Source: Macrostomum hystrix
Lineage: Eukaryota; Animalia; Platyhelminthes
Assembly (NCBI GenBank): GCA_950097015.1
Contig: CATNEN010000011.1
Span: forward strand, 4,402,001-4,466,000
DNA: 64,000 nucleotides
Direction: 5' to 3'
Each line of letters begins with the position of its first letter. Within the stretch, counting starts at the first letter, position 1. Below are positions 3,886 through 37,703 of this stretch, piece by piece. Position numbers and translations under genes: made by a program. Under the pieces are notes generated by a model that saw only the letters and a program-made list of their open reading frames with translations, was not told where the DNA came from and made no database searches.

Positions 3886-6800
3886 TCAAGGTTCGTAACG
3901 GACCGGTGCCGACTTCACCCTATTAGACCGTCGTGGTTCGGCATCCCGCTCGACAGCTCGCTCCACCCCAGGAGGCTGCGGTTGCGTGTCTGGTGCCGGG
4001 CGGACGTCAGCTACGTGACGGGGAAGGCCATCGACCTCCACCGTAGACCCTTGTCCCTGGCCCGTCACGCGTCCCCTAGGCCACTCGTCGGTGCATCTGA
4101 CGGCCGGCGGTTTAACAAACACTTCTGTTCCCACTGGCAGGGTGGGGTTTGCCTCCAAGGTCTCCAAGGCCTCAGGGAGAGACACAGTTGGCGGCTTCCA
4201 GTCATAGGTGCTGACCATTCTGCTGGGCACGCTGTCCTTGCGAGTGCCATCCTTTGGAGCCATGTTGTACCAGAACACCATTTCCAGTACGTCCTTTCCG
4301 GTTCTGGCTGCCATCCGCTTAATCGTCCGATGATTGCGCTCGACTATTCCGTTGCCTGACGGCCGGTGAGCGCAACGGAAGAGGAGCTGCACTCCCCAAG
4401 CCTCACAAAACGCACGGACCTCAGCGGAGCGGAAGGTCGGTGAATTGTCGAGAAGCAGCTGCCAGGGAGGGCCCCGCTCTCGGAACACCTGCACGAGTAT
4501 CCCGGTAATTGACGCTGTCCGCTCGTCGGTGAGTTTTCGCCACAGCGAGAATCTGCTCGGCCCGCAGTCAACAATGGACAGATAGCGGTCGTCCTTAAAG
4601 TGGGTCACGTCGCAGGCCAAGCGCCACCAGTTTGCATCCACCTCGAGTCTGCCATGGTCCCAAACCATCGGCGCAGGGTCTACGGACTTGCATCGGATGC
4701 AGTTTGCAACGATGCGCTCAACCTCTTCACGCAGTACCTCACGTTCAGGGAAGCACAGTTTGGCCAGGTAGAGCGTCCTGTCCACCCCGAAGTGGTGCTT
4801 CTCGTGGCACGCACGGAGATCCATGTCAACGGGGCGCAGCGCCACTGCACAGAAGGGCCGCTGGCGCAGCCACTGTTGCGGTACTCGCGTCAGTGCGTCT
4901 GCCTTGTTTGCTGAAGATGGCACCAGCGATGTCAGTAGCTCGAGCTCGCACTCCGACGCCGTGTCTCGGATTAATGATAGCCGTTTCCGAACCAGAGCTT
5001 CACCGAGACCTTTGACTCGCACGGGCTTATCGCCGACAATCAAAGACTGGAGCCAGCCGTGCACGGTTGCAGAATCAGTCAACACTTCAACTTTCCTCGT
5101 GCCCCAAGCGAGGGCAAGGTTGAGACCCTTAATGACCGCCTCAAGTTCGGCAAGATTGATGTGCGCAGCGTCGTCTTGTTTTCGCAACCACGAGGCGTCC
5201 TCCACGATTACGCCACCAATTTCGATGACGGCTCCAATGGCGATGCTGCTGGCGTCGCACCAGACGCGACAGCTCGAAGTCTCGTCAACGGTCCACACCC
5301 CAGCGACAGGATCTCGTTCCTGGACCATTCCGCTGATTTCTTGGGCGATCCGCATGGCAGACTCGCTGACGATAGCGTCCCACGCGATTGTGCTGGTGAC
5401 CCGCTTCAAGTAGCTGCATGCGACACGCAGCCATGCGGCGACGGGGAAATGGCCTACTAGCTGGCCGCACCAGGAGAATAGTTGCCGTCGTGTTGCTGGA
5501 CCTTTCAACTGAGAGAGGACATTGTCTCGTTTCCAGCAAATGACCCCATCCTCTCGACGGTAGACGCGGAGGCCGAGCACGCGGCCCCCAATGAGGCTCT
5601 CAGGAGGCTTGGCTTCTAGCCCGAACCGGGCAAGCAACCCAGTTACGCGTTCATTCGGAATCTTGCTATTGTTCACAATAATGTCGTCAATGTAAGAGTC
5701 CGTGGCCTCACGCACGTCGTCTTCCATCGACAGGACTTTGTTCACAACCGCCGTCATAATTTTTGGCGCCACGTTGAGTCCGAATCCTAACCGGGTGAGA
5801 CAGTAACGGCGGCCTTTGAACCTCACTACTTGGTAGCGCCAGAGACTGGGGTCCAATCGCAGTTGTAGGTAGGCCTTCCGCAGGTCGATGATACTCGCAT
5901 TCTCACCGAGCCGCCGCCAGGCCCGGAGCTTGGCGCCGCACACGACGCTTTCGGCGGTGTGGCTTGACACGTACTGGTTCAACTCGCGATAGTCGAGTAC
6001 AGGCCGCACCTTTGCTTTGTTGGTCTGCACCACTGCCATCAGAGGGATGACGCCGTCACTGTCACCTTCGAACGGTAGCAGCCAACCTCGCTGAATCCAG
6101 TCTTTTATCTCTGACTCATACTCGCCTACCGCCTCTGGTGGGACTCGGTATTGAGCTATCGTATTTGACAGTAGTGGGGCCTCATCCAGCCACTTCCATG
6201 CCACTGTCCACTCTCCATCGATAAACTTAGCAGAGAAGTCTTTTTCCTCAAGCACCAGGCACGCCTCGGTTAAAGTATTTTTCGCAAGCCTCGCTCCTCT
6301 TGCCGGACAGCTCACAGGTGACTCGACCTCTCCTGCCGGACAGCTCACAGGTGACTCGACCTCTCCTGCCGGACAGCTCACAGGTGACTCGACCTCTCCT
6401 GCCGGACAGCTCACAGGTGACTCGACCTCTCCTGCCGGACAGCTCACAGGTGACTCGACCTCTCCTGCCGGACAGCTCACAGGTGACTCGACCTCTCCTG
6501 CCGGACAGCTCACAGGTGACTCGACCTCTCCTGCCGGACAGCTCACAGGTGACTCGACCTCTCCTGCCGGACAGCTCACAGGTGACTCGACCTCTCCTGC
6601 CGGACAGCTCACAGGTGACTCGACCTCTTCTGCCGGACAGCTCACAGGTGACTCGACCTCTCCTGCCGGACAGCTCACAGGTGACTCGACCTCTCCTGCC
6701 GGACAGCTCACAGGTGACTCGACCTCTCCTGCCGGACAGCTCACAGGTGACTCCGCCTTTGGTTTTGAGAAAGCCTTGGCTACCGCAGCAGTCTCCAGCG

Positions 6801-7209
6801 CTAATGACTGCTCTTCAATACCGAAGCGGACACTGCGGCAATCTCGCTTCACAGAGACACCGCCCAATCGGCTGATGGCATCCATCCCAAGCAGCAAATC
6901 GAACCCAGGAAGGATGTCCATAACGATACATCGCAGCACTGGTAATTGGTGGCCTCGAACAGACAAAGTAACGTCAGCCTCCCATTCACATTCTGCTGAG
7001 TCACCATTCATCATCGTGACCCTCTCGTGAACGGGACGTTTTTTAACTCCAGTAACTCGTGAAGAAACGATGGACCGCGAACAACCAGTATCTACTAAAG
7101 CAGTAACGACCAAACTATTAACATGAACACTTAACGATTGTAGGTGCGCCGGTGCACAAGGAAGCCCGTTGGCGCAAACATTCCGCGCTTCCATCACTCG
7201 TTTTTTTTT
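3886..7209 (-). CDS. pol: Gypsy Pol polyprotein (aspartic protease, RT, RNase H, integrase)
   Basis: Protease LVDTGC; RT RPVLDYRELN, DLRKAYLQ, YIDD; RNase H WCDAS, ELEA, LTDS; integrase H-H-C-C zinc motif, CDVTHF, LLDNSP, GIVERNHRTIK. Frame is open. Confidence 0.95.
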   Translation of the reverse strand, partial: KKKRVMEARNVCANGLPCAPAHLQSLSVHVNSLVVTALVDTGCSRSIVSSRVTGVKKRPVHERVTMMNGDSAECEWEADVTLSVRGHQLPVLRCIVMDILPGFDLLLGMDAISRLGGVSVKRDCRSVRFGIEEQSLALETAAVAKAFSKPKAESPVSCPAGEVESPVSCPAGEVESPVSCPAGEVESPVSCPAEEVESPVSCPAGEVESPVSCPAGEVESPVSCPAGEVESPVSCPAGEVESPVSCPAGEVESPVSCPAGEVESPVSCPAGEVESPVSCPAGEVESPVSCPAGEVESPVSCPARGARLAKNTLTEACLVLEEKDFSAKFIDGEWTVAWKWLDEAPLLSNTIAQYRVPPEAVGEYESEIKDWIQRGWLLPFEGDSDGVIPLMAVVQTNKAKVRPVLDYRELNQYVSSHTAESVVCGAKLRAWRRLGENASIIDLRKAYLQLRLDPSLWRYQVVRFKGRRYCLTRLGFGLNVAPKIMTAVVNKVLSMEDDVREATDSYIDDIIVNNSKIPNERVTGLLARFGLEAKPPESLIGGRVLGLRVYRREDGVICWKRDNVLSQLKGPATRRQLFSWCGQLVGHFPVAAWLRVACSYLKRVTSTIAWDAIVSESAMRIAQEISGMVQERDPVAGVWTVDETSSCRVWCDASSIAIGAVIEIGGVIVEDASWLRKQDDAAHINLAELEAVIKGLNLALAWGTRKVEVLTDSATVHGWLQSLIVGDKPVRVKGLGEALVRKRLSLIRDTASECELELLTSLVPSSANKADALTRVPQQWLRQRPFCAVALRPVDMDLRACHEKHHFGVDRTLYLAKLCFPEREVLREEVERIVANCIRCKSVDPAPMVWDHGRLEVDANWWRLACDVTHFKDDRYLSIVDCGPSRFSLWRKLTDERTASITGILVQVFRERGPPWQLLLDNSPTFRSAEVRAFCEAWGVQLLFRCAHRPSGNGIVERNHRTIKRMAARTGKDVLEMVFWYNMAPKDGTRKDSVPSRMVSTYDWKPPTVSLPEALETLEANPTLPVGTEVFVKPPAVRCTDEWPRGRVTGQGQGSTVEVDGLPRHVADVRPAPDTQPQPPGVERAVERDAEPRRSNRVKSAPVRYEP
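6301..6752 (-). repeat. In-frame 33-bp minisatellite (about 14 copies) in pol, encoding (ESPVSCPAGEV)n
   Basis: Plus-strand unit TGCCGGACAGCTCACAGGTGACTCGACCTCTCC starts every 33 bp from 6301 to 6730. Confidence 0.97.
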
Positions 7210-7906
7210 GAAAATCGGCGCGCTGCGGGCATCGAGCAGCCACATGTCCCGCTTTTCCACAAACAAAACAACCTTGATTCGCTCGGTTGCGTTCCATGCA
7301 CTCTTTGCTCACATGGCCCTCCTTGCCGCACGAGTAGCACGACATCACTTTGTTGCGTGGGGCGAACTTTCCAGCGCTTCGCGCATTTCCTGCGCTCGAG
7401 ACAACACAGCAGGACTCGCGACTGATCGTTAAGTTTCTAGCTTTCTCCGCTAGTTCATGGAGTTCGAGCTCTTTTAGAGAGCAGGAAGCGATCAGCTGCT
7501 GACTGACGGTTGCTGGAAGCCCGCGGACGAATGCGCATTTGATCCATTCTTCCCCGGGGATCTCGTCCACTAGGCGTGCAAGCCTCGTGAGATCCGCGAG
7601 AAAAACGTCCACGGACTCCCCGGGGCCGAGCCTGCGTGACACGAACTCGTCGTATGCTTTGTACTTGTTTGGGCAGAACGCTGAGGTAAGAGCCGCTTTC
7701 AGAGTTTTGTAGTCCGACTTGCTTTCCTCGTTTAGTGCCTGGTACACGGCGAACGCACCTCCAGATAGAAATAGTGGGATGAAAGCAGCCAGGTCATTCA
7801 CTTTTTGGAGCTTGGCAACGAGTTCGAGCTTCTGTGCCCAGCGCGAAAAATCCTCTTCACCGTCGTACTGCTTGATTATGTCGCTGAATTTGACTGCGCT
7901 TGCCAT
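7118..7906 (-). CDS. gag: Gypsy Gag (262 aa)
   Basis: Two zinc knuckles, CYSCGKEGHVSKEC and CFVCGKAGHVAARC; lies upstream of and overlaps pol. Confidence 0.92.
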   Translation of the reverse strand: MASAVKFSDIIKQYDGEEDFSRWAQKLELVAKLQKVNDLAAFIPLFLSGGAFAVYQALNEESKSDYKTLKAALTSAFCPNKYKAYDEFVSRRLGPGESVDVFLADLTRLARLVDEIPGEEWIKCAFVRGLPATVSQQLIASCSLKELELHELAEKARNLTISRESCCVVSSAGNARSAGKFAPRNKVMSCYSCGKEGHVSKECMERNRANQGCFVCGKAGHVAARCPQRADFQKKTSDGSAECLRQRASLCTGAPTIVKCSC

Positions 7907-29099: not shown

Positions 29100-30550
29100 G
29101 TACTTGCATTACCCAATGTCTGCTGCCTTGAAAAGGGTGAAATGCTGGTGTCCAATTGTGGATCATAGGATGGATCATTTTCAGCATCATCGGCTTCATC
29201 ACTTGAAGTATCTGAACAGTCAAAACCAGCTAAAAGATAGTTTGGATTTAAGTTTTAGCATAAACAATAAGCACATATTTACTCCAAAAACAAAAAGCAT
29301 CAGCACATGAATATTTATTAAGAGAAAAAATTAATATCTAAACATACCGGTTAAGTGATCTGCGAATTCGAATACATTTTCTGTGTCAAAGGCATCACCA
29401 AAGGCAGTAATCTTGCTGTCAAGAGCCCTTGAGAACTTTTAAACATGTTGCATTGTTGCTTTCACAAGAACTGTACTAAGTACAGTTTGGCCATTTTCAG
29501 TAAGACAAAAGCTAGATCCCTAAAATAATTGAAATATAAAGTTTACAATGCAAAATAATGTATTATACAATTAAACATTAGGAAAAAAATCAATTAATTA
29601 TAATTGTAGAGTAGTACAAATTAGATACTTGCCTTGGTCCAGTTTAGCTATTCAGATGGTGAAAACTATAATATTGTAGCAGTCCAATATTATTTTTGCG
29701 CTATACGGTATATCTTCAATATATTTTCTACGTGATACATATTATATATGCATATATAATTCATATATATATGCATATATATATGCATATTCATAATGCA
29801 TATGAATATTCTATATTCTATAGATATTTTTTATCTTCTAGTAAAATACGGTATTAAAACAAATCTTAAGGAACACTATATAAGTGAAAGAAATTTGTGG
29901 CTAGAAATACAACCCGCCAGTGAGCCAAGAAGGCAAAACTGAGTTAAAACTTTGAAAAATCAAACTGGTTGTGTTATTTACTAAAGTGGTACATTCGAGT
30001 ACGAAGATAAGTCGAGGATTGAGGCTGTGACCCTCTGATCCTGGAGAAACGCCCAGTTGAGACTGGAGAATAAGGAGACCTAGTGCCTTAGAGGGATAAA
30101 CCGCTCGTGCCAGTGCAGAAGCGCTACCTAGGAGAAGCTCACAACGTAAGAGTTGTGAAGTTAAAACGGCCCTTTTCAGGGCCATGAGTTAAAGATGTAC
30201 GGAGAGTGCGAATAGTAGAGAAAGAGATAAAAGAGCGGAAGAGGCCGAAAGATACGCTACCAAGAGAGAGAAAAAGTAGAGTGAGAAGCCCTGTTACAAC
30301 TTTAAATAAAAAGAAAAATAATATATAGACTGTTGCATATAATTGCTATAATTATTGTCTCTAGTAGTGCAATTAACTTAAGAAAACAAAGACATCTTAT
30401 TACCTTTAAGAATTTTGAATGTGTCAAAGGTATCACCTCACTATATGTCCGCGTTTTATTAAACCATAGCAGCACAAAAATATTTTGCAAACGTTCTGTG
30501 GCAAACTTGTCAAGATTGCCATTTCGCCTTCGCTTGGGTCTCTTGTCCAT
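29100..30550 (-). pseudogene. Spliced BEN-type accessory gene upstream of the element 3 transposase (N-terminal part)
   Basis: Predicted exons 30550-30404, 29519-29348 and 29229-~29100 join in phase: MDKRPKRRR..IFVLLWFNKTRTYSEVIP..|GSSFCLTENGQTV..KFSRALDSKI..|AGFDCSDTSSDEADD. The N-terminal motif matches YILLFWEAEQKYELLP of 53220. One internal TAA; BEN domain itself not clearly found. Confidence 0.55.
29896..30298. mobile_element. Probable solo LTR (about 400 bp) inside an intron
   Basis: TGT...ACA ends, higher GC than the flanks, no ORF. TSD is imperfect (AATT vs ACTT). Confidence 0.5.
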
Positions 30551-30613
30551 GAGAATAGCAGCCAGATTTTTAGGTCTAGAATAGTTTATAGGCCTACACT
30601 AGGTGTTGTTGTT

Positions 30614-30840
30614 GCTCGCACCGGCGGGACACAGTGCCTGTGAGGTATGAGTCAGTCCAGGCCCACGGGCTTTGGTCTGCGATGCCTCACACCTGCAGCC
30701 GTTTTTTGAGCAGGCCTGGCAGGAAGGAGACCTGTACCTTCGGGTGCAGGAATCCCTCCAACGCTGTCCCGTCAGCTGACCCATGGGTACACGTCCCGCG
30801 AGTGTTCAAGGCTGACCCTAGGGCAGCCGGACAGAATGGG
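30614..30840 (+). ncRNA. HDV-like self-cleaving ribozyme at the retrotransposon 5' end
   Basis: P1 GCUCGC(30614-19)/GCGAGU(30798-803) with G1-U wobble; P2 CCCAU(30780-84)/AUGGG(30836-40); P3 GGG/CCC around L3 UACACGU; P1.1 AC/GU; P4 GGCUG..CAGCC; J4/2 CAGA (catalytic C at 30832); long structured J1/2. Folded by eye. Confidence 0.8.
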
Positions 30841-31270
30841 CAACAGCGCTGGATGACCCATCCAGGGCCTCCGGCCAAACTGGGTACCTCTAGCCCCGGC
30901 TGGAGGGAAAGGTGTCACCCTTTGACCTTAACAGGGTATGTGGCTTGTCCGCATTTTTCGTGCACCTGTGCGTGATCAGGTACCTCTGGCTACGGCCCTG
31001 AGGGACAGGTGTCACCCTTTGACCTTAACAGGGTTTGCGGCCAGCCCGCAGGCCTCGGCGCCGGCTCAATGGCACCCTCCAATGTCCCAGTGTTGACCGT
31101 GCTGATGGACGCTTGGCCAGGGAGTAGTCTGGTCTCTTACGGTTCCTCCCGGTGGTCCTGGCATCCCACCCCGGGTTGTAACTTGTCTTTTTTGGCTGCC
31201 CCCGCTCAGTTTTGGGATCGCGGCTGAGCGGGTTATTCCTGCCTGTGTCTACAGGAAGCCCCTCTCTTCA

Positions 31271-32830
31271 TTGCAGCTTTCAATGGCTTCTAGCCCTTCA
31301 ACTGCTCCGGCCGAGGACACCATGGTGCCTGAGGCCATACACGCTGCGGCGCCCGGGCTAGCTGGCCCCGCGACCGCCACAAATGCCGCGCTGCCCAACT
31401 CGCGCGATGACCGGGGCGCTAAGCGCTCCACCACCTCTGGAGCGGCAAAACGCCGTAGGCGCATGCTGGCCCACGGCACGTCGGCTCCATTGACCAAGGA
31501 CCAGGCCCAGGCCAGAGGGGCCGAAGGGGCTCTGCCTAGGGCGGGGGCTGGGGCGGGGGGCCTTGTGCCTCCTGCCCAGGCTCCTGCACGGGGCGGAGCC
31601 CACGACGCCCCGAGGCCAGGGTCGCGGGCCAAGGAGGGCCCGGCGCCCATCCGGACGGCTGCCCGGCCCGAAGGAGAAGCGGAGGCGGAGGGCCCTGTGC
31701 CCACCGCCGACGCAGATCCCGAGGGTGGGGACGCCACCGGACAGGGCCCGGGACCACAAGCTACCTACGCCGCCATCGCACGTAGGCAACCTGCCGTCAT
31801 CATCACCGGCAGAGACGGGAAAAGGCTGAGCAGCGAACAGCTCAGCGACATTTGCCGCAACATAGATGCTATGTTGTGGCAACTTCAACTGAAGGGCGAG
31901 CCCCTGGCGGTCGGCGCAAGCGCTACCAGGGAATCGTGCTTCGTCGTCTGGCCCGGCGATGCGGAATCGGGGCGGCGGCTCCTCGAGTTGCTGCCCACGC
32001 AGAGCTGGGCGGCTGGCCTCGAGTTCCTACGGGAGAACGAGCCACCAAAGACCAAGCGACACCGTATCTTCGTCCCGGCGAAAAGTGTCGTCACCAGCGC
32101 TGAGGACCTCCGCAGGGGCCTCATCGCGATGAACCGGGAGCTGCCGACAGCGGGCCTGATCGTGCACCGCACGATCCTGCGCCCCGACGGCACCGGTTTC
32201 ACCGCCATTCTGGGCCTGTCCGAGCAATGGACACGCCGCTACCCAGATGGCGCCAACATTTGCATTGGTCTGTGGAAGACCAAAATCTTCGCCTTCGAGG
32301 CGGATAAAACCCGAGGTCAGACCGGGCCCACCACCGTACCGGCCAATGAAGGGTCCTCGGACCCCAAGGCTGGGACTGGGGGCAGGGCCCAGTCGTCCCG
32401 CCAAAAAAGGCCAGAGCGTGCCATCGCTGGCAGCTCTGAGCGTCGCCCCGCGCGTGTCACAAAGCGCCGGGGCCTTCTCCAGCGGGCCTCCGAGGTGGTG
32501 CGAACCGCCAAGATGGCCCAGCTGCGCGCTGAGATGCGCGGTGGCCCACCGGGGCAGGCGCCGCAACCAAGGGCTACGGGGGAGGCCTCAGAGGTGCCCA
32601 GCTCCATCGAGCAGGGCCCTTCGAGCGCCCCTCCCACGGCCCAGGGAGCGGTGTCGGCTCCAGTTGAGGGCGACTCTGGGCCTGGGCTCGGGGCCGGGGG
32701 CGGGGACTGGGCGGCTGACGCCGTCGAGTTCCCGTCTCCGGCTCGGGGCCTGGGCACGGAGGAGCCCATGGCTACCGACATCGACCCGGAGGAGGAGGAC
32801 CGCCTTCTGGCTGGGTCCCCCTCCAAGTAG
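31271..32830 (+). CDS. ORF1 (gag-like nucleic-acid-binding protein; central region resembles DUF4780)
   Basis: Long ORF ending 12 nt upstream of ORF2. A low-complexity Ala/Gly/Pro N- and C-terminus surrounds a globular core (RHRIFVP..LRRGLIAMNRELPTAGLIV). The exact start codon is uncertain. Confidence 0.85.
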   Translation: MQLSMASSPSTAPAEDTMVPEAIHAAAPGLAGPATATNAALPNSRDDRGAKRSTTSGAAKRRRRMLAHGTSAPLTKDQAQARGAEGALPRAGAGAGGLVPPAQAPARGGAHDAPRPGSRAKEGPAPIRTAARPEGEAEAEGPVPTADADPEGGDATGQGPGPQATYAAIARRQPAVIITGRDGKRLSSEQLSDICRNIDAMLWQLQLKGEPLAVGASATRESCFVVWPGDAESGRRLLELLPTQSWAAGLEFLRENEPPKTKRHRIFVPAKSVVTSAEDLRRGLIAMNRELPTAGLIVHRTILRPDGTGFTAILGLSEQWTRRYPDGANICIGLWKTKIFAFEADKTRGQTGPTTVPANEGSSDPKAGTGGRAQSSRQKRPERAIAGSSERRPARVTKRRGLLQRASEVVRTAKMAQLRAEMRGGPPGQAPQPRATGEASEVPSSIEQGPSSAPPTAQGAVSAPVEGDSGPGLGAGGGDWAADAVEFPSPARGLGTEEPMATDIDPEEEDRLLAGSPSK

Positions 32831-32842
32831 ACCTCTGCCTGC

Positions 32843-35800
32843 ATGATGATCCCCGGAATATCATGTCTGCAAGTTAACACCCAGCACTGCGTGGCAGCAT
32901 CAGTCAATCTGATGCGCACGACAGAGCGCATGATGCCGGGCCTTGTACTTGTGCAGGAGCCCTGGCTATCAAAGAACAAGCCAAGCAACATTCCTGCTGG
33001 CTATGACTGCTTCTGCATGGCAGACTCTGTCCGCCCTAGATCACTGATCTATGCCGCAAAAGCCTTAAATGCGTGGATGAGACCCGATCTCTCTAACGGG
33101 GACATCTGCGTCATCCAATCTGCACACATTGTGCCTAACAAGTTGACCCTCGTGGCATCCGCCTACCTGGCAGGCGACGCCCCCGTGGTTAGCGATACCC
33201 TCGTCGCCCTCTGTGAATTCGCCAGGGCACGAAACTTCGAGCTGCTCCTCGCGGGAGATGTAAACTCGCATCACACCCACTGGGGTAGCTCAAAAATCAA
33301 TGACCGCGGCGAAGAGCTCCTGGCCTTCGTCAGCGGCACGCCTCTAAACTTCTGCAATGTGGGCAACACGCCCACTTTCGACAATGGGCGGTGGGCTGAG
33401 GTGCTTGACGTCACCCTGGCCTCACCCGGCATCCTCCCAAGGGTGCTGGGGTGGGAGGTGTGGGAGACCGAAAGCTCGCTCTCGGACCACCGTTTCATCC
33501 GTTTCAACATCGGCACCCCCGATAAGAAGCAAAAGCCTATTTGGAGGCGTAATGTCAGAAATACCGACTGGCCCGCGTTCAGCCAAAAGCTGCATGAGGG
33601 CCTTCGGGATTCTGACCCCTCCATGGCCATGGAAACCACGCAGGACCTGGATGGAGTGGCTGCCCTGCTGGGCGGCGCCATCACAGAGGCCTACGAAATG
33701 GCTTGCCCGCTCAAAGCCTACAAAGGCAAAAAATCGGCCCCCTGGTGGAACCCCGAGCTCGGAGTCCTAAGACGCCGAGCTAAGGCTCTCCAGAGGAAGC
33801 TGAAAACCTCGCACGACCCTGATGACAAAGAGGCCTATACTCGCGCCATCCATGAGTTTAAGGGCCGGGTCAGAAGGGCAAAAGCGGACAAGTGGCGACA
33901 ATACTGCGAAGGGCTTGAGGGCTCGCGGCCCACGGCCCGCGTGGTAAAGGCGCTCACCAACGACCGCTTCTCCAAGCTCTCATCGATTAAAAAGCCGGAC
34001 GGCTCGATCACTGAGCGCCCGGAGGAAACGCTCGAGCTTATGCTAGGGCATTTCTTCCCGAGTGTACCGGCGCACTTCGGCCCAGACGACCACTCGCGTG
34101 GAGGTCAGGGCCTGGCTCAGTCACTCGTTACGAATGACCGCATCGTTCGCGCGGCTAAGTCATTCAATCCTTTTAAAGCACCTGGGCCAGATGGTATATA
34201 TCCGGCCTTTCTGCATGAAGCGGTTAAAAATGGCCGCTTCCTCCATCTCCTCTGCAGACTTCTACGGGCCTGCATCGTGCTGGGCTACGTACCAGCGCGG
34301 TGGCATGAAGCCCGGGTCGTCTTCATCCCGAAGCCCGCCAAAGGCGACTATCGCTCGGTCAAGTCTTATCGCCCGATAAGCTTGACTTCCACCTGCCTCA
34401 AGCTCATGGAAAGACTGGTGCTCTGGCGCCTTCTTACTGTAGAGCTAGGGCGGGCCCCGCTCTCACCAAACCAGCACGCCTTTCGGGCGGGCCGGTCCAC
34501 GGAGAGCGCCCTCCACTGCATTGTGGAGACTCTCGAGAAGGCAGTGCTGGGCAGCGGTTTTGCCCTGGCTGTTTTCCTTGATATTGAGGGGGCCTTCGAT
34601 AACGTTATTTTCGAAGCCTTTGAGAAGGCCCTGGTTTCCAGGGCCACTCACCCCCACCTCGTCCGTTGGGTCATGTACATGATCCGGAATCGCCACGTGG
34701 TGGCCCACCTCGAAGGCAGGGTGCTCTCGGCACCTGTCCTAAAAGGAGGGCCCCAAGGTGGCGTCCTCACCCCACTGCTGTGGAATCTCGTCATGGATGA
34801 GCTGCTAAAAAGCACTCGGCCTGACCCAGTCCTGAAGGTGGGATATGCCGACGATGTGACCGCCATCTGCGCGGGCCCCTCGGCGGAAACCACCAGGGAC
34901 CTCATTCAGGGCTTTATCAACAGGGCGGTGCGCTGGGCGGACCAATGCGGGCTCCGACTCTCTGAGTCCAAGACCGTTGCGGTTATGTTTACCAGCAGGC
35001 TGCGCTGGACCATTGAGCCTCTGACTCTCTATGGCAAGAATATTGCCATGAAAAAGCAGGTCCGGTGCCTTGGTATCCTGCTAGACCATAGGCTTAACTG
35101 GACCCCGCACATTACCACAAAGGCCAAGAGGGCCCTGGCCATTCTGGCGCAAGTCAGGCGAGCCGTGGGCACCACTTGGGGGCTAACCCCCAAAAACCTT
35201 TGGTGGATTTACACGGCGATCATTAGACCGTCAGTCGCTTACGCTGGCCTCATCTGGGCCAGTGCCATGAGCATCCAGAAAAACCTGGAGGCGCTTTATA
35301 GGGTGCAGGGCAGAGCCTGTCGCATGACGCTGGGCGCCCCACCCTCCACTCCCTTTGAAGGCATGAACGCTTTCCTCAACGCTACACCCATTGACATTTT
35401 TGTTAAGGGGGAAGCGGCAAAGTCCACCCGTCGTCTCCTTGATGCGGGTGTATCCTTCCAGAATTCGCGAGCCTTCTCGAAGCGCTCCCTTCTGCCCCAC
35501 TCTGACCTCTGCCTGAAAACTCTGGGCGAGTGCGGAGGGCTCACCATCCTTTCGGACGGGGCCCCGGCCACTTTACTCCGGAGCCACAGGTACAAAGTCA
35601 GCATCTTCCCTCGTAATGAGGTAAAGGACTGCTGGGATGACCCCGCAGTCCACTGTTACACTGACGGCTCCCTGATGAACGGTAAATCGGGATTCGGGGT
35701 GTGCGTCGCCTCGGGTGGCGAGGTCCTCTGGACCCACTCCCAACACTGTGGCAAGAGCTCAAGCGTTTTCCAAAACGAAATGCTCGCCATCAGCTTCTGT

Positions 35801-36547
35801 GCGGCTGAGCTGCGCCAGAGGCAGCTGGCTGGTCGGAGGATCTTTTTTCACTCCGACAGTCAAGCAGCCCTCAAGGCCCTCAGTCGCTGCACCTCTCGCT
35901 CCAGAACCACCTTGGACTGCAACAACCAGTTAAACGGTTTGGCGCAGTCTAACAAGGTGGAGCTGATGTGGATCCCTGGGCACGCCGGGCTCACAGGGAA
36001 TGAGATGGCGGACGAGCTTGCAAAGGCTGGAGCAGCCAGCTCCCTGATGGGCCCGGGCCCGGAATCCCCGATCCCCGCCTCCGTTGTCAACTCCAGCATC
36101 AACCACTGGATGGAGACCCAGCACCGGAGGAGGTGGTCCAGCACCCTGAACTGTCGCCAGTCCAGGGCTGCGGTGCCAACCCCCTCTAGTAACCTGCGTA
36201 AGGCCTTACTCAGGCTAAACCGCAGAGACCTGAGAGCAGTCACCATGGCCCTTTCGGGACATGGCTGCTTCACCAGACACCGCTACCTCCAAGGCCACGT
36301 GCCTGAGGAAACGTGTCCTTTCTGCTGCTCCGGCCGTGAAAACGCCGAGCATTTCATTTGCCACTACCCGGCCTTCACCCGGGCTAGGCTAAAACACCTC
36401 GGGCCGGCACCGACTCTTGCCGAAGCCTGCTCGCCCGAGAACATCCCTCAGCTCGCCCACTTCCTCCGGGATACCGGCCGAGCTGATTTCTTCCCAGCCT
36501 ATGGCGAGGAAGATCGCGCGGCGGAACCGACCGACGGACCACCCTGA
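32843..36547 (+). CDS. ORF2: AP endonuclease, reverse transcriptase, RNase H, C-terminal zinc knuckle (1234 aa)
   Basis: APE: LVQEPW, GDVNSH, PTF, SDH. RT: [34 protein letters not shown]. RNase H: YTDGS, SDSQAAL, WIPGH. Uninterrupted. Confidence 0.97.
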
Positions 36548-37703
36548 GCGGCACCGCCTCGCTGGAGGCCGTCTGGCTGCCAGGGGTTAGCGATATGGGC
36601 GGCAACAGCCGCCTCCTCGCTGCGTCCGTCATGGAGGCCCCCTGCCGCTAAGTCAAGTAAGTCAACACTAGGTGTTATAGCTACTAAAAAGCTGAAATTA
36701 AAAATAAGATAATTTTAAGTAGAAAATAAAGTAATGGCTAGTGATGTGTCTATTGTCTAACAGCTTTATTGCTAGTAAACTAGCTACTGCTACTAGCTAG
36801 CTACCCTGGTATAGCAAAGTAGATAGATAGCCCCACTAAAAAAGCTTGGTCGGATTCCGATCGGAAATGCAGCTCGGAAACCGAGTGGAAATTTGTCCCG
36901 GGAAATCCATTCGGATTCTGATCGGATTTGACGATCGGACTCATCCAGAGCTTTTCGTTTCACTTTCCGAGCTGATATAAATGACGAAGCACAAAGCGAG
37001 TACAAACATGCATGTGCTACAATGTAGCCGAAGATCAGTGTACACGCAGTCACGCATGTACATTTAGACAGCCCGATCCCGTCTGAAAATTCAATGACAC
37101 AAAGACCGGGTGTGCATCATTTTACATCAAATACAAAATTGCTCAATGGCAGCAGATGGAAAGGAATAATAAGTGTTTATTTAGTGTTTACAAAATAGAA
37201 CATTGCAGCAACGCGTGGTGGGCCACCAAAGCAGTCACTAATAGGGTGCAGGTTGGAGACAGTTCGACAAGTATTTTATAGTTGTTAGGTCAATTTGATT
37301 AGGCCTAGTGTAGTGCGGCTGGAAATGTTCTGTTAAAATTGCACTAAATATTTAATTGTTGCTATATAGTAACTATAGCAATTGCAAATAGCATTATTAT
37401 GTTATTAATTTCTACTTTTTTGACCCTTGAAAATAAAGCAAATATTAATTATAAATTATTTTAATCGTTGTCTAATTAAAATATAATCGCACCAGTTTGA
37501 AAAGCGCGCTGCAATCGAGTGAACAATTGTAAGGCGCTGCGCTGCGAGTGAACTGAAGACGTTAAATTGCTGTAGTGAAACTGTTCAAATTCGCGGCCTT
37601 CAAACCCAGTTGTACTACACTAGCATTTCGGTCTCGGAGCAGTTAAAATTTAAGTTAGCGCGAAGTTTCGACGAAAGGGACAATTTTTTACTATGCCACC
37701 AAG

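Follow-up and report, generated by a model that had tools for sequence, protein, structure and literature searches.

HDV-like ribozymes that define the 5' ends of LINEs have been described (PMC3774820, PMC3185411). R2 elements that are cut at their own first base show variable 5' junctions with added bases, and the J1/2 loops of silkmoth R2 ribozymes measure 216-498 nt (PMC3774820). In drz-Agam-2-1, the P1.2 domain joins P1 and P2 and makes cleavage faster, by as much as three orders of magnitude (PMC4908430). In the design descriptor that has been published, U, C and G are fixed positions of L3, P1.1 is C-G/C-G and J4/2 reads C-R-R-A (PMC6326823). Among natural ribozymes, P1.1 is made up of G-C and U-U in CPEB3 (PMC4836649) and of a single pair in L1TcRz (PMC3185411). 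Crystal structures of fast ribozymes show U:A and C:U in Caenorhabditis briggsae, and U:A and U:U in Ackermannviridae (PMC13635239). Hence, a U:A or A-U pair in P1.1 is compatible with fast cleavage.

The window studied here is the whole 64,000-nt stretch of DNA that was analysed. Judging from its sequence, the region 30614-30840 is highly likely to be an HDV-like self-cleaving ribozyme, located at the 5' terminus of a young, active LINE of a Macrostomum-type flatworm. By analogy with the systems above, we infer catalysis at G30614 and a role in retrotransposition. The sequence-only reading had proposed that an HDV-like ribozyme sets the 5' end of a LINE, and the descriptor statistics, the exactness of the boundary and a conservation above that of the ORFs all support this proposal. 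The assignment to the HDV-like class is further strengthened by compensatory changes in a distant relative, found in P1, P1.1, P2 and the J1/2 closing helix, and by the invariance of the proposed catalytic positions.

The host sequence is a GC-rich block (58-62% GC, compared with about 35-40% for the genome) corresponding to an intact non-LTR retrotransposon on the + strand, at 30614-36665. Its complete 5' UTR is 669 nt long and, downstream of the ribozyme, extends over 30841-31282 with two repeat units of ~97 nt (about 30884-31077). ORF1 (31283-32830) has no Pfam match, and its Macrostomum lignano relatives are named DUF4780. ORF2 (32843-36547) carries Pfam domains for an AP endonuclease (Exo_endo_phos, PF03372/PF14529), a reverse transcriptase (RVT_1, PF00078) and an RNase H (RNase_H, PF00075). 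The nearest named proteins are those of M. lignano, with 45-72% identity, so the source is a species related to M. lignano but distinct from it. The 3' UTR (36548-36665) ends in a short TAAGTCAAG-type repeat. Directly past this tail lies the 3' copy of the TSD (36666-36676), an 11-mer identical to the 5' copy, cactaggtgtt, at 30597-30607. The ORF2 domains, the 11-bp TSD and the presence of at least 40 genomic copies identify the host as an autonomous non-LTR retrotransposon. As a correction to an earlier reading, the TSD of the window copy stops 6 nt short of G30614. The six intervening bases, gttgtt (30608-30613), are absent in the other 28 copies and were probably added during 5' joining.

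Two further features of this neighbourhood can be mentioned. The 97-nt tandem units (GGTACCTCT...GGTGTCACCCTTTGACCTTAACAGGGT...), located 3' of the ribozyme, are two in the window and about eight in the sibling copy L033 (~594-1345); they are also kept in L031 (1-190), a contig from another species. These units resemble the promoter monomers of mouse L1. Besides, a second GC-rich block, at 3886-7906 of the window on the - strand, is an LTR-type retrotransposon. It encodes a gag with two CCHC zinc knuckles and a 1126-aa pol with aspartyl protease, RT, RNase H-like, DUF7047 and integrase domains.

The nested double pseudoknot is complete at 30614-30840, in the order P1-J1/2-P2-P3-L3-P3'-P1'-P1.1-P4-J4/2-P2', and every element listed by the sequence-only reading was found in place. 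P1 has 6 bp, formed by GCUCGC (30614-30619) and GCGAGU (30798-30803), the latter strand being invariant in the family. Cleavage is predicted 5' of G30614. In agreement with the G1-Y rule for cleavage sites (PMC6326823), this residue forms a G.U pair with U30803 at the base of P1. P2 pairs CCCAU (30780-30784) with AUGGG (30836-30840), which ends the ribozyme. P3 is made of GGG (30785-30787) and CCC (30795-30797), invariant in 15/15 family sequences, and closes the L3 loop UACACGU (30788-30794), which has the U..CG positions conserved in the published descriptor (PMC6326823). Among the 15 sequences, U30788 and C30792 are invariant, and G30793 is found in 14 (A in L069). The dinucleotide GU (30804-30805) completes P1.1 with the pairs C30790-G30804 and A30789-U30805. 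Both are Watson-Crick, with a composition unlike the viral C-G/C-G, and the A-U pair is retained in 13/15 sequences. Then come the P4 hairpin (30810-30828), with GGCUG (30810-30814) facing CAGCC (30824-30828), and J4/2, GGACAGA (30829-30835). The latter contains the putative catalytic cytosine, C30832, invariant in 15/15 sequences and directly followed by AGA and then by the AUGGG strand of P2. The CAGA motif thus fits the C-R-R-A rule, and the locus agrees with the published descriptor except for one P1.1 pair (PMC6326823).

J1/2 (30620-30779) forms a structured peripheral domain of exactly 160 nt, as had been proposed, and its closing helix and the two hairpins named earlier are all present. 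The closing helix has 9 bp (GGCGGGACA at 30623-30631, UGUCCCGUC at 30765-30773) and encloses three hairpins, at about 30638-30692, 30692-30724 and 30726-30755. The minimum free energy of J1/2 in the window copy is -78.1 kcal/mol (z = -3.77), and none of 200 shuffles was as stable.

A descriptor was used to scan both strands of the window. It combined a 3-bp P3, a 7-nt L3 of the form U.C.CG., a P1 of 6-7 bp that terminates in G.U, a P1.1 of two Watson-Crick pairs, a hairpin at P4, C-N-R-A, a P2 of at least 4 bp and a J1/2 of up to 200 nt. The single match was 30614-30840. Dinucleotide shuffles gave no match, either in 100 shuffles of the window (both strands, 12.8 Mb) or in 1000 shuffles of the element (6 Mb), for a total of 18.8 Mb. 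There was still none when the 5' strand of P1 was dropped, leaving the 3' core only. As the descriptor was composed after the candidate was known, these figures overstate significance somewhat; the match is clearly not due to chance.

Standard models had been expected to miss such a variant, and this is what was observed. No HDV-clan match was obtained with Rfam at gathering score in the window, nor at E<=10 in the isolated 451-nt region 30500-30950. The version of the ribozyme found in the distant relative L079 had no Rfam match at E<=10 either, and a search of the whole genome with RF00094 returned nothing. The 160-nt J1/2 insertion probably accounts for the Rfam miss. A metagenome scan with the conserved J1/2 hairpin was blank. 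Finally, a pattern scan of the genome for a GGG/CCC P3 together with a non-A residue at L3 position 2 gave only four distinct sites, versus one control match. These GGG-UBCNCGY-CCC-N6-7-GG matches are all on the - strand (G000 C1:8066190, C3:15151772, C7:11857328 and C39:8428220). Each has a canonical P3/L3/P1.1 core in which L3 position 2 is a pyrimidine or G, and may be a further HDV-like ribozyme.

The position of the predicted cleavage site was compared among genomic copies. A search of the 220-Mb, 42-contig assembly, in which the window belongs to contig 11, with 30560-30900 as DNA query gave 40 scored matches among 210 candidates. These have 96-100% identity, and nearly all the alignments start at query position 55, that is, at G30614. 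In all 29 near-identical copies with a locatable start, the element begins exactly at G30614, as GCTCGCACCGG, and the upstream DNA is unrelated. The proposal that the predicted cleavage G coincides with the 5' boundary of the element therefore holds well beyond the window copy. The 14 extra copies from sibling subfamilies included in the alignment start at the same G, also with unrelated flanks.

Within the genome, L068, L070, L071 and L075 (G000 C33, C39, C30 and C38) have a common upstream flank, ACTATTACGAGCGTTTGATT, and are thus duplicates of one insertion rather than independent events. In three of them, an internal rearrangement after nt ~134 removes the ribozyme core. As to the base preceding G1 (position -1), T occurs in 12 of the 29 copies (L001-L029), C and A in 8 each, and G in only 1. 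G is therefore marginally depleted (about p = 0.02 against a 19% G background). Cleavage of the HDV ribozyme is slowest with G at -1 (PMC1874588), and a link between this preference and the depletion is speculative.

Sibling subfamilies were retrieved from the same genome with an ORF1 relative (P0001, 53% identical) as probe, and the window copy was aligned with 14 further copies (15 sequences). Nucleotide identity to the sibling L033 is 100% in P1, 96.7% in the 61-nt core and 91.8% in J1/2, compared with 74% in the rest of the 5' UTR, 60% in ORF1 and 72% in ORF2. The ribozyme is thus the best-conserved portion of the element. Because the core helices are invariant in the 15 sequences, this alignment is uninformative on their pairing, for or against. 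Variation is found in J1/2, where one pair of the closing helix is compensated, being A-U in 9 sequences and G-C in 5, and where the CCUGUACC/GGUGCAGG hairpin has a pair that passes through A-U, G-U and G-C. Core deviations are each confined to one copy, and these copies appear decayed. U30805 is replaced by C in L072; L069 has A30789 changed to U as well as the G to A change in L3; L068 has several core changes and an insertion; L073 and L036 have one P4 mismatch apiece.

Some copies deserve separate mention. L046 (710-4524), compared with window 30614-34800, has 95-97% identity in the two ORFs and in the 5' UTR outside the ribozyme, and its ribozyme core is 100% identical, but J1/2 reaches only 88%; J1/2 would then be either faster-evolving or exchanged between lineages. 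L032 and L035 are 5'-truncated copies. An alternative P1 considered in L034 was dismissed, as it sits in the flanking DNA of a 5'-truncated copy.

A more distant comparison was provided by a word search with ORF2. It retrieved P0003, 62% identical, encoded on a Logan contig of 6.5 kb that comes from a different sequencing run (locus L079). The first base of this contig is G1 of an equivalent fold. A relaxed descriptor found a single HDV-like fold in L079, at nt 1-237, with a J1/2 of 163 nt. The background of this relaxed descriptor was 31 matches in 1.95 Mb of shuffles, and 0 of 300 shuffles had a match at nt 1. Pairs were compared by coordinates, since MAFFT misaligned P4 and J4/2 of L079.

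All the compared pairs are preserved in L079 despite the changes, although, the L079 fold having been located by descriptor, they are partly satisfied by construction. P1 is GCUCGC/GCGAGU in the window and GCCUGC/GCAGGC in L079, with two double changes and replacement of the G.U pair by a G-C pair (G1-C194). In P1.1, both pairs are double-changed, from A-U and C-G to C-G and U-A. In P2, CCCAU/AUGGG is replaced by CUCAGA/UCUGAG, with double changes in four of five pairs. P3 is GGG/CCC in both, L3 is UACACGU in the window and UCUCCGU in L079, and P4 is retained as a hairpin of unrelated sequence, with a stem of 5 bp in the window and 11 bp in L079. The J1/2 closing helix keeps its 9 bp with five double changes, and both J1/2 domains are closed three-hairpin multiloops. 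Folding of the L079 J1/2 gives z = -2.15, with 6 of 200 shuffles as stable. The J4/2 of L079 reads C-U-G-C, departing from the C-R-R-A rule. Of all the computational evidence, L079 argues most strongly for pairing of the first six bases with a segment 180 nt downstream, a pairing by which the cleavage site would be fixed.

As to the covariation check that had been proposed, within the family the core helices do not vary and only J1/2 does, whereas compensatory changes appear against L079; core covariation is consequently based on the L079 lineage alone. Concerning other relatives, P0004 has an ORF2 54% identical to that of the window element. In L080, L081 and L082 (ORF2 32-33% identical), the relaxed descriptor found no HDV-like fold; these sequences may lack their 5' ends. 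Word searches with ORF1 led only to M. lignano UniRef entries and to L031, a short contig whose first bases already fall within the 5' UTR repeats.

One part of J1/2 behaves differently. Hairpin 1 (30638-30692 in the window, 26-82 in L079) is about 80% identical between the two loci, with the pattern GGUAUGAG...CCAGGCCCANGGGCU..GGUCU.CGAUGCC, in contrast to P1, P2, P1.1 and P4, which are all altered in L079. Its CAG/CUG stem covaries with L079 (GGG/CUC). The ribozyme model does not explain this conservation at the sequence level. One suggestion, to which we give a rather low probability, is that hairpin 1 is a sequence-specific module within the ribozyme, serving for example to bind proteins encoded by the element or as an internal promoter. 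If so, it would couple 5' processing to RNP assembly or to transcription. The J1/2 domain would then be more than a "pinch", making a larger analogue of the dual element Pr77 of L1Tc.

By analogy with R2, RTE and L1Tc (PMC3774820, PMC3185411), the element would be transcribed either as a segment of a longer RNA or from a start site that lies upstream and is imprecise. The resulting RNA would fold as the nested double pseudoknot, in which the stable 160-nt J1/2 would most likely hold P1 and P2 together, like the P1.2 domain of drz-Agam-2-1. C30832 and a bound Mg2+ would then catalyse scission 5' of G30614. Removal of all upstream sequence in this way would make each new full-length copy start at the same G.

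Three other explanations of the locus have to be weighed against this ribozyme model. That a GC-rich sequence would resemble the fold by chance could be argued from the way in which the fold was found, by eye and with a free 160-nt gap, and from the blank Rfam result. This reading hardly deserves credence: it is effectively refuted by the shuffles, which remain blank even for the 3' core alone, by the coincidence of the site with the first base of the element in 29/29 copies, and by L079, which keeps the fold with compensation. Internal promoters starting at +1 are found in many LINEs. A precise transcription start directed by such a promoter, within the first ~230 nt, could set the 5' end and leave the HDV-like fold incidental or vestigial. 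No part of the element is better conserved than these 227 nt, and a promoter or a site of protein binding would also account for this. The similarity of hairpin 1 to L079 goes beyond what the ribozyme model requires, and the lack of an Rfam match points the same way. However, promoter function at the DNA level predicts no compensation between the first 6 nt and a site 180 nt downstream, nor in P1.1 and P2, and for this reason we consider a promoter acting without a ribozyme very improbable. It also leaves the match-free shuffles unexplained. In L1Tc, the promoter and the ribozyme occupy the same bases (PMC3383444), so the two functions can coexist; an internal promoter may likewise be present within the ribozyme bases here, as in Pr77 of L1Tc.

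The fold may also be real but dead or very slow, on account of its A-U pair in P1.1, its 6-bp P1 and its long J1/2. In that case, it would act as a structured element of the 5' UTR, for instance in protein binding or translation. The slow cleavage of CPEB3 has indeed been attributed to a weak P1.1 (cited in PMC13635239), the J4/2 of L079 breaks the C-R-R-A rule, and activity at 30614 is itself a prediction made from sequence. Against this, every position of the catalytic core agrees with the published descriptor (L3 with U..CG, a G.U pair where cleavage is expected, C-A-G-A), natural ribozymes with a weaker P1.1 are among the fastest known (PMC13635239), and a stable J1/2 domain speeds cleavage (PMC4908430). 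Moreover, the family is young, its 29 copies having near-identical 5' regions, all of which terminate where cleavage is predicted. An inactive fold is thus very improbable, and an active HDV-like ribozyme is the reading that we retain.

How unusual this ribozyme would be can be judged from its described counterparts. The sequence-only reading had called the A-U pair of P1.1 atypical. The A-U and C-G pairs are real and covary, L079 having C-G and U-A, but the atypicality was overstated, U:A being known in fast ribozymes. Nor is the 6-bp P1 a departure, as had been suggested, since a P1 of 6 or 7 bp is usual (PMC4908430). Similarly, the long J1/2, also presented as unusual, has structured equivalents in R2 and drz-Agam-2-1 (PMC3774820, PMC4908430). 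What the locus adds is a well-supported HDV-like ribozyme in a young, high-copy LINE family of a free-living flatworm, which extends HDV-like 5' processing to one more animal lineage and one more LINE with two ORFs and an RNase H. The locus also reveals a natural swap of P1.1 composition between relatives (C-G/A-U versus U-A/C-G), which supports the view that the viral two-G:C descriptor rule is too strict. In addition, it illustrates that HDV-like ribozymes whose J1/2 carries a large insertion escape the Rfam models.

Among the known systems, drz-Agam-2-1, from an RTE element of Anopheles gambiae (PMC4908430), shares with the window element an HDV-like core at the 5' end of a retrotransposon and a large folded J1/2 with a closing helix beside the core, which in drz-Agam-2-1 acts as an accelerating "pinch". 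However, J1/2 is a 160-nt three-hairpin multiloop in the window and a single P1.2 helix in drz-Agam-2-1, P2 has 5 bp instead of 12, and the host is a flatworm two-ORF LINE with an RNase H, not an RTE element. The R2 5' ribozymes of Drosophila, silkmoths and others (PMC3774820) have their site at the exact 5' end of the element, as predicted for the window, together with added bases at the 5' junction, a long J1/2 and a highly conserved P3/L3/P1.1 core. In contrast, R2 has a single ORF, is site-specific and is transcribed together with 28S rRNA, whereas the window LINE inserts at dispersed sites and would therefore have a different upstream transcript at each copy.

L1TcRz/Pr77 of the trypanosomatid L1Tc-ingi elements (PMC3185411, PMC4035085, PMC3383444) is likewise an HDV-like ribozyme at the very start of a dispersed LINE, one with APE, RT and RNase H in its ORF2; it has a non-canonical P1.1 and is also missed by standard descriptors. 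In contrast, it additionally functions as an internal promoter, and it is only 77 nt long with one pair in P1.1, compared with 227 nt and two pairs in the window. The CPEB3, C. briggsae and Ackermannviridae ribozymes also do without the viral two-G:C P1.1 (PMC4836649, PMC13635239), but they are compact, at about 68 nt, and do not form the ends of retrotransposons, and both P1.1 pairs of the window ribozyme are Watson-Crick (C-G and A-U), unlike theirs. The general picture of how HDV-like ribozymes work is unchanged, and the locus very probably represents a known trick in a new LINE family, rather than a new kind of ribozyme.
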